64,000 nucleotides of DNA, taken from assembly GCF_003704095.1 (NCBI RefSeq), contig NW_020843538.1, positions 1 through 64,000 of the forward strand, written 5' to 3'. This DNA comes from Pocillopora damicornis. Lineage: Eukaryota. The first letter of the stretch is position 1, and every line of letters begins with the position of its first letter. The position numbers and the translations under genes were made by a program. The notes below the pieces were generated by a model that had not been told where the DNA came from, searched no databases, and saw only the letters and a list, made by a program, of their open reading frames with translations. Shown in pieces: positions 1 through 18,038 of this stretch.

Positions 1-3000
1 ACATGCCCACAACAATGGTGTACGGTTGCTTTTTCCTGGAATGTTTATATCCACCTTCTCGTTTAGAACAAGCTCGACAGCCTTCTCTGCGTCATTGTTG
101 TCTCTACACAAGTGCAGCTCAGTTAATGTATCGATCTTCTCAACATGGCCTTTGTACAGTTCTCCTATATTAACATATCCCTCTCCTTTATCTTGGAGAG
201 CCAAGAGAATCTCTGACGCAGTTTTTCCAGGAAATGCCTTTGCTTGGCTTCCTGTTTTTTGTGAGTTCATATCTTGCAAAAGATTCGCAAGATAGGGATG
301 AAAACTCCAAAGCGTGTCATAGTCTCCTTGAAATACAGTCGCCTGCAGTTGATTGAAGCCGGATCGTGCATCTTCATGGAGGATAGCTTTCCTTGAAAGG
401 GATCTGAGGCTAGGCTGAAAAAAAAATTATGTACTGTAAATTAAGGAAACAAATGAAAGTGCTAATTGAAAAACGTCTATTACAAATGAATGAAATTATT
501 TCAAAATAAAAATTGATTCAAGTAACTAGATCATCTAAATGTTTCTGTCTGTACACTGATATAACTATGATTTATTGCGACAAGTTCCCTACCGATTTCA
601 AACTAAGATCTAGTCCATAACTTGAAGGTTGTTGTTTAAGAACAGAACATAGTAATGTTGTATCAGGCCCGTTGGCAATCGAGGCAAAAAGACTGTATTC
701 TATCTGGGTCCCATAATTCCTAAGAATATTTCAAATTTAAATTCGTAGCGCATATTCGTGATAAATGAAATGACAAGACAAAACGAAAGCAACCAAGATG
801 AGCCAAATGAGTGGGAAAAAACAGAGAGAGTTTATAACTACCTACCAAAGCATTCATTGGAAATAGCTAAACCTAAACCCTTTAACTCCCAAGATCTGAT
901 TGTTAATTCTCCCCTCTACCTGCTACATATTTCCTGGTAAATTATAGTAAAAGGGGTAAGTTTCTAAAGAAACTGTGATGCTGCGTAGGTGGGAGAGTGT
1001 AACAGGGCAATTTAGTGTTATCAAATGAGTTCGCCCTTCGTCAGAGTGATGAAACAACGCTCAAAACGTCAGCTTTTAAACTCTTTAGGGTGGCCACTTC
1101 ACGTTATCAACAAGTACTACATTTCGTAAATTAGTAACGAGAATTTGGTGTTCGATCAAGTTAACAACTTCCTGATAAGTTTGAGATTTCCCATTACCCG
1201 TTTGGTGGATAATACATTGATATTATCAAGAGAAGTGACATGTTAATCGCTTGTGGGAGTCAAAGGGTTAACCCGAGACAAATGAACACAACGGGGAAAC
1301 AGAAGGATCAAATAACACCTGTTAAGCGAGCTGGGAAGTTAAAGGCCTGGAGACAGACCACACTACGCGCATTGCTTTATCTAAATGCCTCAACCTGTTC
1401 CCACTCGGTGGGGTTACCATTCTTGGACGTAGTTTACTTTATCACCGTACCGGTTGGTTGTAACTGGAAGTCGCATTATTTCTCAGGAGCAGCGCAGCTA
1501 CGTATCGGTGATTGTTGCGATAAGCCTTCTGTAAAGGCGTTTTATGAAACTGAAAGATAAAAAGTTCACCTCGGTCAAAACAAGACAGTTACTACAAACC
1601 ACTCTGGAAGACGAGCATTCAAAAATATGACTGAGGATAATTTTCGAAACGTGTATGCGACTCTCTGGAAAATTAAACCGCGTGCCTGATAATTGATACT
1701 AGTATTTTCGACATATTGTCAAATACATAAACACGAAAGGCCAGCAACTTACCCTATCTACAGCATTTACATTTGCACCGTGCTGTAACAGGAGTTTTAC
1801 AACAGCTCCCTGACCATACCATGCGGCAAGGTGAAGGGGCGTCAAACCAAACTGCAAAATAGAAGCAAAGCATTGACTTAAAGTTTTTACCGATCTACCA
1901 AAACTATCAAAATAGAAAGAACACAGACACCAGAAACTAAACAGGAAAAACCGGAAGATAAAGCAAACAACCTTATCTGTTTGGTCGACTAATTCACCAC
2001 TTTCAAGAAGTGCTTTGATGACGTTACATCGACCGTTGATGGCAGCTTTGTGTAGTGCCCCTCTTGATAACTGTAAGAAAACGTGCGCGGAAATACATTA
2101 AAATTTCAGTGGGCTTTTTTAAACGTAGCACAAATACAAACGTGCAGAGTATGAGTCAGATGTCAAGGATTTGAGGTGGTAGCGAGTGCACCTTATGCTG
2201 GGAGCAAGCACGATGTAAATCAACCAAAATACGAACAAAAATAATAAGAACATTTCTAAATCTACATATTATAACGCATTGTGGCATTTTTCCACTATAC
2301 TTGTTTAAATGGCTGAATCAAGATCAGACTTAATTAAAGGAAAACATCGAGCCGCAAAAATGTATCCCAACATTACAGCTTCCCTCTTAATGAGAAGGAA
2401 GAATATTCTAAAAATGTGAAAAGGGTTTAAGTCTTAAACGGAAAAATCGGAAAGGGAACTTTCCTGTTTTTCTCCATCCGGCTATACCCTTTTAAAAAAT
2501 CAGTCCCGTCATACATAGCCTAAGCAAATTCTATCTGTCACACCTTCCAACAGGAGTAATATAACAGGAATTCATGACGCGAAAGAGTACCGGAAGTAAA
2601 ATGAACATCAAGGAGAACAGAAATATTGTTTCATGAACTCCATCGGAATCCATTTGTCGGTTGGAATCCGATTGAGTACATCAGAATCCAGTGGGAGTCA
2701 ATTCGTGTCCATCGGAATAACTGGAAGTCTTGGGGTAAGCCGAAACTCAGACAAGTACGGTGTATGTGAAATATGCCTTGTTCTTAAAGCCATTGAGCGA
2801 TACAGCTCATTTTAAGCGCGGATGACTTGAAAGATACCTTGTTTTTCGTGCCTTTGAAACGAAACGGCACTTAACACAGACAAATGCAGTATACGTGAAA
2901 TACGCGTCGTTTTAAGTCTCACACAATCAGAAAATCGCTTATTCCACTAGATTCTATTCGTGTCCGTCCGATTCCATCGGACACCGATGGAAAGCATTTT

Positions 3001-17200: not shown

Positions 17201-18038
17201 GTTGATGATGGCGACACATTGGAACAATTACATGGCCGTCTACCATCTCTCCATGCAACAGATGAATGCAGACGTGAGTTGTAGCACGGGTCATGCCGCA
17301 CTGCATGTTGCAGTGATGAAAGGATTTTTTCATATCTCTAATCTCCTTGTACGCTCTGGGTGCAATGTTACCTTGAAGACCAAAAGTGGTAAGACGCCAC
17401 TCCGTCTGGCAGTTCAAAATGGACATAGACACCTCGTGAGGCTTTTGTTGGAAAACAATGCCGATGCGAACATGCGCGATGAAAGTAATGCAAATGAGAG
17501 GCTATTTCTTGTTCGGGGCAATGAGAAAGGAAGACCAGCCTGGTATTATATTATGGTTGAGAGATCTCTTTTGGGTTTGTTTCTGAAACGAACTCATGGA
17601 GGTAAACTAGATGTAAATAACTTTGGTACTATTATTCGATCAGGGTTGGGGGAGCCTCCTTCAGAAGCCGAAATAACAAAAAATTTGAACAAGTCGAGTG
17701 AATTTCGGAAAGATCCTATAGGTAAGACACCCCTCCACATTGCGTGTGAAATTGAAAATGGAAACCTTGAAGTCATTGAGCTTTTGGTTAAGTATGGCGG
17801 AGAGATAAATGCTCGAGATGGAGATGGCTTCACTCCACTGCAGACGGCAGCAATACTTGGCAAGATGCAGACTGTTACAAAGCTTGTGGAGCTAAAAGCC
17901 GATGTCAATTTGACTACGAAAGATGGAAAAGATGCCGCCGACCTAGCTCAAATGAACGAAGAACCTATGATAGAGGAATACCTCAAATCAAGAAGGAACT
18001 CCCTCATGAGGATTTGGAATTCATTAGTCAAAAGTTAG
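11272..18038 (+). CDS. Gene B: Mib/HERC2-ZZ-Mib/HERC2 (Mind bomb MZM-like) plus ankyrin-repeat protein, no RING
   Basis: Exons 11272-11623 ([26 protein letters not shown]), 12035-12212 (ZZ finger CRTC..CLDC..CSAC..H..H), 13124-13349 ([25 protein letters not shown]), 13733-13999 (VDLKC...), 14666-14764, 14896-14994, 15207-15305 (three 99-nt ankyrin exons), 16710-18038 (ankyrin-rich terminal exon). All phases compatible. Confidence 0.88.
14330..14393. repeat. (AAT)n microsatellite
   Basis: Seen directly in a gene B intron. Confidence 0.9.
15326..15905 (+). mobile_element. Internally deleted Crypton-like (DUF3504 tyrosine recombinase) element relic
   Basis: Strong hairpin at 15350-15410 (gtgttttatcggg..aaaaccac / gtggttttt..cccgataaaacac). 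Truncated ORF from 15601 ([34 protein letters not shown]) resembles Crypton/ZMYM-type N-termini, recalled from memory. Confidence 0.55.

Follow-up and report, generated by a model that had tools for sequence, protein, structure and literature searches.

Two divergent genes at the end of a coral contig combine related ankyrin repeats with dissimilar N termini, which raises the questions of how the two architectures arose and whether the proteins work as a pair. The window analysed here is a stretch of 64,000 nucleotides of Pocillopora damicornis (NCBI RefSeq assembly GCF_003704095.1, contig NW_020843538.1, positions 1 to 64,000 of the forward strand), and both genes lie in its first 18,038 positions. 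A first-pass annotation had suggested that they may represent an undescribed modular sensor–effector family and possibly a co-regulated pair. We consider it likely that genes A and B are paralogues in a small ankyrin-repeat family, so far known only from stony corals, in which one Mib/HERC2–ZZ–Mib/HERC2 (MZM) module was replaced by a HEPN module and the two forms serve different outputs.

Two genes with a common ankyrin body

Gene A runs from 6229 to 1 on the minus strand and is truncated by the contig end; gene B occupies 11272..18038 on the plus strand. The exon models come from a direct reading of the sequence, in which all introns of both genes are GT–AG. Exons were concatenated for a check of frame and stops and for BLAST against a set of retrieved proteins, and later comparisons were made exon by exon. 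The joined models have compatible phases and no stops. The features are as follows.

5584..6229, minus strand: A exon 1, ATG at 6229, predicted Swt1/CXorf38-like HEPN domain of 215 amino acids, ends in phase 1, covered by RNA contigs
4844..4979, no strand: assembly gap (N) inside A intron 1
4608..4820, minus strand: A exon 2, 71 codons, phase 1 to 1, helical exon (coiled coil is the first-pass label)
4093..4205, minus strand: A exon 3, Ser-rich linker, phase 1 to 0
3572..3619, minus strand: A exon 4, 48-nt micro-exon, phase 0 to 0
1972..2070, minus strand: A exon 5, 99 nt, phase 0, single ankyrin repeat, joints in RNA
1753..1851, minus strand: A exon 6, 99 nt, phase 0, single ankyrin repeat, joints in RNA
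1451..1549, minus strand: A exon 7, 99 nt, phase 0, single ankyrin-like repeat, joints in RNA
1..414, minus strand: A exon 8, start of the long exon, 138 codons, then contig end
6230..11271, no strand: intergenic region, 5,042 bp separating the start codons of A and B
11272..11623, plus strand: B exon 1, ATG at 11272, first Mib/HERC2 (Pfam MIB_HERC2, 8e-11), ends in phase 1
12035..12212, plus strand: B exon 2, ZZ zinc finger (Pfam ZZ, 3.5e-9), phase 1 to 2
13124..13349, plus strand: B exon 3, second Mib/HERC2 (Pfam MIB_HERC2, 2.2e-13), phase 2 to 0
13733..13999, plus strand: B exon 4, final strand of the second Mib/HERC2 followed by a Ser/Pro/Glu-rich linker, phase 0 to 0
14666..14764, plus strand: B exon 5, 99 nt, single ankyrin repeat, 99-nt counterpart at Oculina locus L050
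14896..14994, plus strand: B exon 6, 99 nt, single ankyrin repeat, counterpart at L050
15207..15305, plus strand: B exon 7, 99 nt, or 93 nt from an alternative in-frame acceptor at 15213
16710..18038, plus strand: B exon 8, long exon, 442 codons and stop, Pfam Ank, repeat array with an insert of about 65 amino acids

Both genes have three 99-nt phase-0 ankyrin exons (exons 5–7) followed by a long exon 8. Exon by exon, A and B are 48%, 76%, 55% and 45% identical from exon 5 to exon 8 (exon 8 over 136 amino acids), with shuffle z-scores of 15 to 54; same-position pairs align with scores of 78–128 and off-position pairs with 10–44. The N-terminal exons of the two genes have no similarity (shuffle z < 1). 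These values and the exon models bear out what the first-pass annotation had claimed of the two genes: a common exon structure with homologous ankyrins, unrelated N termini, and N-terminal modules joined to the ankyrin body in phase 0. In the whole genome, the sole specific relative of B exon 8 is A exon 8 (E = 3.8e-28), the next matches being generic ankyrin repeats (7e-15), and a whole-genome search found two members of the ankyrin-body family only, A and B.

Transcript support and extent of gene A

RNA contigs from four runs contain the gene A joints between exons 1 and 2, 2 and 3 (4608/4205, runs X1 and X8), 4 and 5 (runs X6 and X8), 5 and 6, 6 and 7, and 7 and 8 (1451/414); the joint between exons 3 and 4 is absent from the matches shown. 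The splicing of B is supported by orthologues and by an intron-free contig, probably a transcript, of a related coral. We weighed whether the fusions are artefacts of gene modelling, the N-terminal exons forming separate genes without splicing to the ankyrin exons, a reading that could appeal to the missing exon 3–exon 4 joint of A and to the reliance of the B junctions on other corals. It is extremely unlikely: RNA contigs join exons 1–2–3 and exons 4–8 of A, as a check of its splice model against RNA had called for, the same fusions recur in RefSeq models of Stylophora and Oculina and in the intron-free contig (which encodes P0278), and the phases fit without stops.

The assembly gap does not disturb the model. 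RNA contigs of runs X1, X5 and X6 (from three studies) join 5584 straight to 4820 across it, the frame continues from phase 1 to phase 1, and the Stylophora orthologue P0160 aligns unbroken across the exon 1/exon 2 junction at residue 216; the gap therefore lies outside the coding sequence of A. Exon 2 is conserved in P0160, P0030 and P0043, exon 3 at the Stylophora loci L046 and L049, and exon 4 at 71% in L046, and exon 8 is 74% identical to P0160. Gene A has the Ser-rich linker exon proposed earlier, but not in direct contact with the ankyrins, as the 48-nt exon 4 lies between it and the first ankyrin exon.

Its model also had to be corrected to an incomplete one: 138 residues of the long exon are present before the contig end, and a search for the remainder found it absent from the present assembly. 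Because of this truncation, we infer the full ankyrin body of A from its orthologues. Two RNA contigs match exons 4–8 at 97–99% identity and the exon 1 part at 80% only; they point to another paralogue, to a divergent allele or to a chimeric assembly.

The predicted HEPN domain of gene A

Exon 1 of A matched no Pfam model, even at E 10. Among 45 aligned homologues, however, 21 match HEPN_Swt1 (best 1.3e-5), 16 match DUF4559 (best 1.8e-7), which we take to be the CXorf38 family, and 2 match HEPN_DZIP3; an Atlas feature search on the domain indicated the same families. The RN-x3-H motif is intact (R165-N166-R-G-S-H170) and fits the HEPN Rx4-6H pattern, and its R, N and H show little or no variation across 10 paralogues and the 45 homologues. 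At a position where Trp is nearly invariant in the family (W168), gene A carries Gly.

The AF2 model of the domain is all-alpha with a pLDDT of 96.5. Structural comparison by VIA-align gave Z = 7.0 to the yeast Swt1 HEPN domain (4pqz; 125 of 136 residues), 6.1 to 1wwp, presumably a HEPN-family protein (its record title reads only 'ttk003001694'), and 5.3 to the HEPN toxin 7ae2, all within the background for helical proteins (Z < 8). Foldseek returned nothing below E 1 for the model against the PDB, and a profile search of PDB sequences returned designed helical proteins only (E > 0.3). A complex prediction with two copies of the exon (score 0.09, mark 0.32) speaks neither for nor against dimerisation. 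On the motif, the families of its homologues and the predicted fold, we provisionally assign exon 1 to the Swt1/CXorf38-like group as a predicted RNase, which sharpens the earlier label 'HEPN-like'.

This domain is widespread: 592 representative proteins match its profile, and the P. damicornis genome has at least 14 paralogues. Long proteins with the same domain (n = 36) contain nSTAND3 (16), NACHT (7), NB-ARC (5) and Ank (16), and in other corals it mostly forms the head of STAND/NLR-like proteins. The HEPN–helix cassette of A is also 57% identical to the N terminus of a Stylophora TPR protein (P0043).

Gene B, a Mind-bomb-like protein without RING

The Pfam matches in B are two MIB_HERC2 domains, ZZ and Ank, in agreement with the MZM module recognized at first pass. 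Exon 4 matched no Pfam family and is partly conserved in Oculina, where the first exon of the orthologue aligns to B exon 1 over residues 1–117 and P0165 is 63% identical over exon 8. The insert in that exon (residues about 261–330) is non-ankyrin sequence of about 65 amino acids, conserved across a 17-sequence alignment and modelled by AF2 with a beta–beta–alpha–beta–alpha fold. An Atlas search with the insert scored below 0.9 against generic ankyrin clusters only and was uninformative.

The order of an MZM module followed by ankyrin repeats is that of Mind bomb (MIB1/MIB2). Unlike Mind bomb, B has neither a REP (SH3_15) domain nor a C-terminal RING: Pfam finds no REP in B or its orthologues P0165, P0162 and P0278, the B reading frame stops at 18038 inside the ankyrin exon, and the orthologues, also without RING, end at the same point. 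The canonical MIB-like protein P0279 has both, with zf-C3HC4_3 as its RING. B alone cannot act as a RING E3.

Relatives in other corals

Stylophora P0160 (873 amino acids) matches A exon by exon at 54–77% and continues into a full ankyrin body, and Oculina P0165/P0296 match B at 57–63%. The layout of three 99-nt phase-0 exons and a long exon with the insert of about 65 amino acids is found in the window, at the Stylophora loci L046 and L049 (the latter the locus of P0160) and at the Oculina locus L050. An intron-free contig of 3,057 nt, most likely a transcript, encodes P0278, a protein of 880 amino acids in which an MZM module precedes the ankyrin body. For HEPN domain, MZM module and ankyrin body alike, dN/dS against orthologues is 0.15–0.27; by this measure, A-type and B-type genes are under purifying selection.

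Across stony corals, four kinds of N-terminal module occur on this body: MZM, HEPN with coiled coil, a GT4 'conflict' glycosyltransferase and one of unknown type. The GT4-conflict domain stands ahead of the ankyrin body in Acropora P0166 (2.7e-74), and Oculina P0162 has a sub-threshold match to TRADD-like_N. Genes of the family are currently annotated just as 'ankyrin-1/2-like' or 'uncharacterized'.

A probable single replacement of the N-terminal module

We built a tree of the ankyrin body from 15 sequences, rooted on two generic ankyrin outgroups and covering the corals that a word-based search retrieves. Robust-coral bodies form a clade (100/100), outside which the Acropora GT4 and unknown types branch. 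Within it, the HEPN types fall into one clade (100/99), whose sister is the Oculina MZM type P0162 (98/94); this clade is nested among the MZM types, which are basal. One HEPN clade inside the MZM types argues for one old replacement of the 5′ exons and not for recurrent shuffling. The idea of a modular family thus holds to the extent that different heads occur on the body across stony corals, but this genome has only two members and the single HEPN clade points to one replacement.

The ancestral robust-coral form would have been an MZM module on the ankyrin body, without REP and without RING, a form that B retains. In one lineage, the MZM exons would have been replaced once, at the phase-0 intron before the first ankyrin exon, by a cassette of three or four exons (Swt1/CXorf38-like HEPN, helical exon and Ser-rich linker), giving rise to the A type, which was probably duplicated later.

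The basal position of the MZM types could also be read differently, with B a decaying Mind bomb E3 paralogue that has lost REP and RING, the shared ankyrins being Mind bomb's own, and A a chimera built on that remnant. The Mind bomb domain order of B and the identity of about 38–41% between its MZM module and that of P0279 (MZM, SH3_15, Ank, RING) fit this account. We nevertheless find it quite improbable, because at least three coral lineages keep the RING-less form whole, at a dN/dS of 0.15–0.24, so that it is not decaying, and because the ankyrin body resembles the ankyrin region of P0279 only generically (23–28% identity, pairwise E = 3e-6) and has its own conserved 65-amino-acid insert and exon layout.

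The head-to-head arrangement

The pair could be imagined as a co-regulated, head-to-head sensor–effector unit, as in paired plant NLRs, with one protein sensing and the other executing. No gene lies in the 5,042 bp between the start codons, the common ankyrin body could heterodimerise, and the N-terminal modules look effector-like (HEPN) and adaptor-like (MZM). We compared 10-kb flanks in two species, and the arrangement is not conserved in either: the 10 kb upstream of the Stylophora A orthologue (L049) contain no MZM exons, and the corresponding 10 kb at the Oculina B orthologue (L050) contain no HEPN exon. The A-type genes of Stylophora are tandem neighbours of one another.

The intergenic region itself points the same way. 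Its A-proximal half (about 6236–8667) is duplicated on another contig (C2788) together with the 5′ exons of A only, collinear with the window on either side of the N gap, and recent insertions of dispersed repeats interrupt it at about 6748–7041 and 7785–8391. Downstream of the duplicate, the present assembly contains no ankyrin body. We considered the copy as a pseudogene and rejected this, as the stops fall beyond the splice donor of the exon, which is itself open.

Moreover, no STAND NTPase (NACHT, NB-ARC or nSTAND) was found in B or in P0160 and P0094, two A-type proteins of full length, so A and B are not NLR-type proteins. These observations do not support a conserved, co-regulated pair like paired plant NLRs, and we judge the coupled pair suggested at first pass to be very unlikely.

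Comparison with known systems and possible functions

Several elements of these architectures have precedents. CXorf38-type (Swt1-like) HEPN proteins of animals were catalogued by Anantharaman et al. (2013, Table 1; PMC3710099), and the same catalogue includes cnidarian fusions of HEPN with ankyrin or NACHT. The A-family homologues resemble the CXorf38 type in matching HEPN_Swt1 and DUF4559, but the copy in A is below Pfam detection and has no visible Zn-ribbon insert. After it come a helical exon and the particular ankyrin body of this coral family, and neither an NTPase nor a death-fold domain is present. For marine invertebrates, repeat scaffolds on which HEPN and GT4 effectors are swapped have likewise been described (Kaur et al. 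2021, PMC8195603). As in those repertoires and in coral NLR-like proteins, variable effectors (HEPN RNase, GT4) sit on ankyrin scaffolds, architectures differ between closely related corals and the same HEPN heads nSTAND3, NACHT and NB-ARC proteins; unlike them, the A/B family lacks a STAND NTPase and any convincing TRADD-N or death-fold adaptor. PMC8195603 makes no mention of the MZM module. From Mind bomb, B differs further in an ankyrin region that is not specifically related to that of the canonical MIB-like protein.

RNase L consists of ankyrin repeats, a pseudokinase and a KEN/HEPN RNase. Gene A resembles it in combining an ankyrin array with a HEPN-superfamily domain, an analogy that suggests ligand-gated RNA cleavage, although in A the domain order is reversed, there is no kinase-like domain and the HEPN family is a different one. 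A may cleave RNA through a HEPN domain that has kept its R..N...H motif, and B may act as an adaptor or regulator through protein binding by its MZM module; as it has no RING, such a role would not involve ubiquitin ligation of its own. In both proteins, the ankyrin body would serve as a platform that binds the same kind of ligand or partner, and the two would relay the signal to separate outputs. Judging by the associated domains, they may act in innate immunity or the stress response.

A bolder reading takes the ankyrin body with its insert as a stony-coral recognition platform without NTPase, on which HEPN, GT4 and MZM heads are exchanged by exon replacement, so that one ligand could lead through A to RNA cleavage and through B to machinery of the ubiquitin or Notch-ligand type; such proteins would form an undescribed innate-immune class parallel to NLRs. 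We hold this to be rather doubtful.

The gain is incremental and not conceptual, given that shuffled effector domains on repeat scaffolds are already known from marine invertebrates. Even so, A and B offer a clean, datable and transcript-supported case from an animal gene family in which a 5′ module was replaced at a phase-0 intron, with both the old (MZM) and the new (HEPN) forms kept under purifying selection. The HEPN head of coral NLR-like proteins can apparently also work on an NTPase-free scaffold, and if the domain proves active as an RNase, reef corals would have in gene A a tractable candidate for RNA-directed immunity. The comparison also reveals a conserved Mind-bomb-like protein that lacks the RING.

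A shared ankyrin body carrying exchanged heads

Genes A and B carry swapped N-terminal modules (heads) on a shared ankyrin body, HEPN-like in A and Mib/HERC2-ZZ-Mib/HERC2 (MZM) in B. This part of the first-pass annotation is well supported; its wider interpretation was partly right, with the pairing of the two genes not conserved as far as 10-kb flanks in two species show. Exon models were derived from genomic sequence, with GT-AG at every intron.

Exon models of genes A and B, from genomic sequence
6229..5584, - strand, gene A exon 1
4820..4608, - strand, gene A exon 2
4205..4093, - strand, gene A exon 3
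3619..3572, - strand, gene A exon 4 (small, conserved in Stylophora)
2070..1972, - strand, gene A exon 5
1851..1753, - strand, gene A exon 6
1549..1451, - strand, gene A exon 7
414..1, - strand, gene A exon 8 (long exon; truncated by the contig start after 138 codons)
11272..11623, + strand, gene B exon 1
12035..12212, + strand, gene B exon 2
13124..13349, + strand, gene B exon 3
13733..13999, + strand, gene B exon 4
14666..14764, + strand, gene B exon 5
14896..14994, + strand, gene B exon 6
15207..15305, + strand, gene B exon 7 (second in-frame acceptor at 15213)
16710..18038, + strand, gene B exon 8 (long exon)

In both genes the N-terminal part closes in phase 0. Three 99-nt phase-0 exons come next, with one ankyrin repeat in each, and the long exon comes last. 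Identity between A and B is 48% in exon 5, 76% in exon 6, 55% in exon 7 and 45% over 136 amino acids of exon 8 (shuffle z-scores of 15–54), and same-position exon pairs score 78–128 versus 10–44 for off-position pairs. The N-terminal exons show no relatedness in the shuffle test (z below 1). Genome-wide, the only specific match to the long exon of B is exon 8 of A (E = 3.8e-28), the remainder being generic ankyrin matches at 7e-15 or weaker. Exon-wise identities, z-scores and genome search together confirm a common ankyrin exon chassis behind unrelated N-terminal modules.

The body also contains a conserved insert of about 65 amino acids, predicted to fold as beta-beta-alpha-beta-alpha and found in all ankyrin-body relatives, including those of Acropora; neither Pfam nor Atlas yielded an assignment for it. 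In exon 8 of B this non-ankyrin segment lies at 17490–17700 (residues ~261–330; pLDDT 63–80).

Two features of gene B concern splice acceptors. Exon 7 has AG acceptors at 15207 and 15213, 6 nt apart and both in frame, which would give an exon of 99 or 93 nt. The acceptor and start of exon 4 are duplicated locally (13647–13690 versus 13727–13770; 'aaag|gt.gatttgaagtgtata'), and the extra copy may serve as a decoy or as an alternative 3' splice site, use of which would lead into a stop.

Transcript evidence for gene A

Because its long exon leaves the contig start, gene A is incomplete in the assembly. The window is the start of its contig, and a genome-wide search of the assembly (234.35 Mb, 4,393 contigs) did not find the missing part. 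The authors of the published 234-Mb Pocillopora damicornis assembly state that up to 14% of the non-repetitive sequence may be missing (PMC6208414).

A run of N at 4844–4979 falls within intron 1 of A. RNA contigs from three runs in three studies splice directly across it (5584/4820), the split codon at the junction of exons 1 and 2 reads through from phase 1 to phase 1, and the alignment to the Stylophora orthologue is unbroken at this point (residue 216), so the gap leaves the coding sequence of A untouched. Among the matches listed, RNA also joins 4608/4205 (exons 2 and 3), ~3572/2070 (exons 4 and 5), 1972/1851, 1753/1549 and 1451/414, all with GT..AG ends on the minus strand. The RNA runs in which the sequence occurs are labelled as coral or marine metagenomes. 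Among the matches listed, the splice model of A thus stands for exons 1–2, 2–3 and 4–5 through 7–8.

Two RNA contigs of ~1.05 kb from two studies (records 14 and 17, runs X6 and X8) match exons 4–8 of A at 97–99% identity, whereas their exon 1 part is only 80% identical and ~293 nt in between are unmatched to the window. The pattern suggests a further paralogue, an allele that has diverged or a contig chimera, and hints at an A-type copy or alternative 5' cassette that may be missing from the assembly.

The intron between exons 7 and 8 of A contains a short dispersed repeat (~870–1140) with more than 40 genome copies at 92–97% identity. RNA-contig depth there reaches tens of thousands, against tens on the exons, and loose ends are numerous at 876–879; the element is probably SINE- or MITE-like, abundant and transcribed.

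Identity of the two heads

Exon 1 of A matches no Pfam model, but its relatives are informative. It has at least 14 paralogues in the Pocillopora genome, across which R161, R165, N166 and H170 are invariant; R165, N166 and H170, which form an RN-x3-H motif, are nearly invariant in 45 homologues. At position 168, where the family has a nearly invariant Trp, A carries Gly. Pfam matches among the 45 homologues are to HEPN_Swt1 (21/45, best 1.3e-5), DUF4559 (16/45, best 1.8e-7) and HEPN_DZIP3 (2/45). The AF2 model is all-alpha (pLDDT 96.5). Foldseek returned no match to this model; VIA-align ranked the yeast Swt1 HEPN domain second (Z 7.0, 125/136 residues), a score within the helical-protein background, as are those of 1wwp (Z 6.1), which we take to be a probable HEPN-family chain, and the HEPN toxin 7ae2 (Z 5.3). 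Taken together, these observations give good support to the earlier description of this head as HEPN-like, probably of the Swt1/CXorf38-like branch. The CXorf38 family is listed as active, with fusions to NACHT, ankyrin, CARD and DEATH domains in Nematostella and other animals (Anantharaman et al. 2013, PMC3710099).

In total, 592 representative proteins matched a profile built from the exon 1 paralogues, and for 168 of these the E value was below 1e-30. Among 36 long representatives with this head, 16 carry nSTAND3, 7 NACHT, 5 NB-ARC and 16 ankyrins, and some carry TPR, LRR or Roc-COR; the HEPN head therefore occurs chiefly at the N-terminus of STAND/NLR-like proteins from corals. The N-terminus of P0043, a TPR protein of Stylophora, shares 57% identity with the HEPN-plus-helix cassette of A, indicating that this cassette has moved between scaffolds.

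Three Pfam matches across exons 1–3 of B (MIB_HERC2, 8e-11; ZZ, 3.5e-9; MIB_HERC2, 2.2e-13) agree with the Mib/HERC2-ZZ-Mib/HERC2 head first read there; judged from sequence, these exons are the MZM module of Mind bomb. Several other genes of this genome account for ~21 MIB_HERC2 matches; the copies in B are the most divergent. Whereas a canonical MIB-like protein (P0279) combines MZM, SH3_15, ankyrins and RING, neither REP/SH3_15 nor RING was found in B, whose open reading frame ends within an ankyrin exon, the point at which its orthologues also stop. The MZM modules of the two are ~38–41% identical, but their ankyrins share only generic likeness (23–28%). Lacking REP and RING, and with generic ankyrin likeness, B is not a Mind bomb E3.

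Relatives in other corals

The closest proteins to the window genes are from Stylophora pistillata, a member of the same coral family as Pocillopora. The family survey was a word-based protein search, which returns few corals; its query was the section of Stylophora P0094 that covers the ankyrin body, and matches were checked by exon-wise tblastn and Pfam. Among the specific relatives, HEPN, MZM, GT4 and one unassigned head were recovered. HEPN-type relatives are from Stylophora (P0160, P0094, P0164, P0152 and P0161), and MZM-type relatives are P0165 and P0162 from Oculina and P0278 from a probable coral transcript contig. In Acropora P0166 (PF20706, 2.7e-74) and P0167, an N-terminal GT4 'conflict' glycosyltransferase precedes the body, and in Acropora P0163 the N-terminus has no assignment. 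P0162 has a TRADD-like_N match ahead of its MZM that is sub-threshold (18.9 bits versus a cut-off of 23.7).

Gene A is 77%, 54%, 69% and 74% identical to P0160 in exons 1, 2, 7 and 8, and B is 57% identical to P0165 in ZZ and the second Mib/HERC2 domain and 63% in exon 8. The three 99-nt exons and the long exon are kept at three genomic loci of relatives (L046, L049 and L050). P0278 is one open frame on a 3,057-nt contig without introns, which we read as a transcript from a related coral in which MZM is linked to the ankyrin body.

In a tree built from the long-exon region, the ankyrin bodies of robust corals group together (100/100), with the Acropora proteins outside. HEPN types are monophyletic (100/99), their sister being P0162, an MZM type from Oculina (98/94), and B groups with P0165 (99/98) and next with P0278. 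On the simplest reading, the MZM form would be ancestral in robust corals, with a single replacement of MZM by the HEPN cassette and duplication afterwards. Values of dN/dS against orthologues (A exon 1, 0.17; A exon 8, 0.27; B exon 8, 0.15; B ZZ and second Mib/HERC2, 0.23–0.24) indicate constraint on both heads and on the body.

Two Stylophora loci (L046 and L049) hold A-type genes in tandem arrays, and the HEPN exon of P0161 is reduced to a 40-residue remnant.

Possible function

Shuffled immune-type domains are a pattern already described in marine invertebrates, and the architecture of A and B falls within it; what is new is the variant, an NTPase-less ankyrin scaffold with a swapped HEPN or MZM head, including a RING-less MZM protein. 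The ankyrin body with its ~65-aa insert is the constant part and would be a binding platform. In A it would be coupled to a predicted RNase (HEPN), loosely like RNase L, and in B to a protein-binding MZM that would itself lack ligase activity, perhaps as an adaptor or regulator. The domains found in association with these modules (STAND NTPases, the GT4 'conflict' glycosyltransferase and the sub-threshold TRADD-like_N of P0162) argues for a possible role in immunity or stress, a reading of such domains that follows a published framework (PMC8195603) from which Mib is absent.

Genomic arrangement

The start codons of A and B are 5,042 bp apart, and the genes had been proposed to form a co-regulated head-to-head pair. 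No MZM exons occur within 10 kb upstream of the A-orthologue locus in Stylophora, where another A-type copy lies downstream, and no HEPN exon occurs within 10 kb upstream of the B-orthologue locus in Oculina. As far as these flanks in two species show, the layout is not conserved, which speaks against the proposal.

The A-proximal half of the intergenic region and exons 1–3 of A with their introns (3713–8667) are duplicated on another contig, C2788 (~67200–71650, loci L005 and L047; 77–80% nucleotide identity). The HEPN exon there is open, with a dN/dS of 0.54 against exon 1 of A. Homology ends near an N gap, and no ankyrin body was found downstream; the copy may be a truncated paralogue, or the assembly may be broken at this point.

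Two dispersed repeats lie between A and B. One (~6748–7041) has copies at 79–96% identity on several contigs; the other (~7785–8391) has a counterpart on contig C2761 at 98–99% identity, and its insertion is therefore recent.
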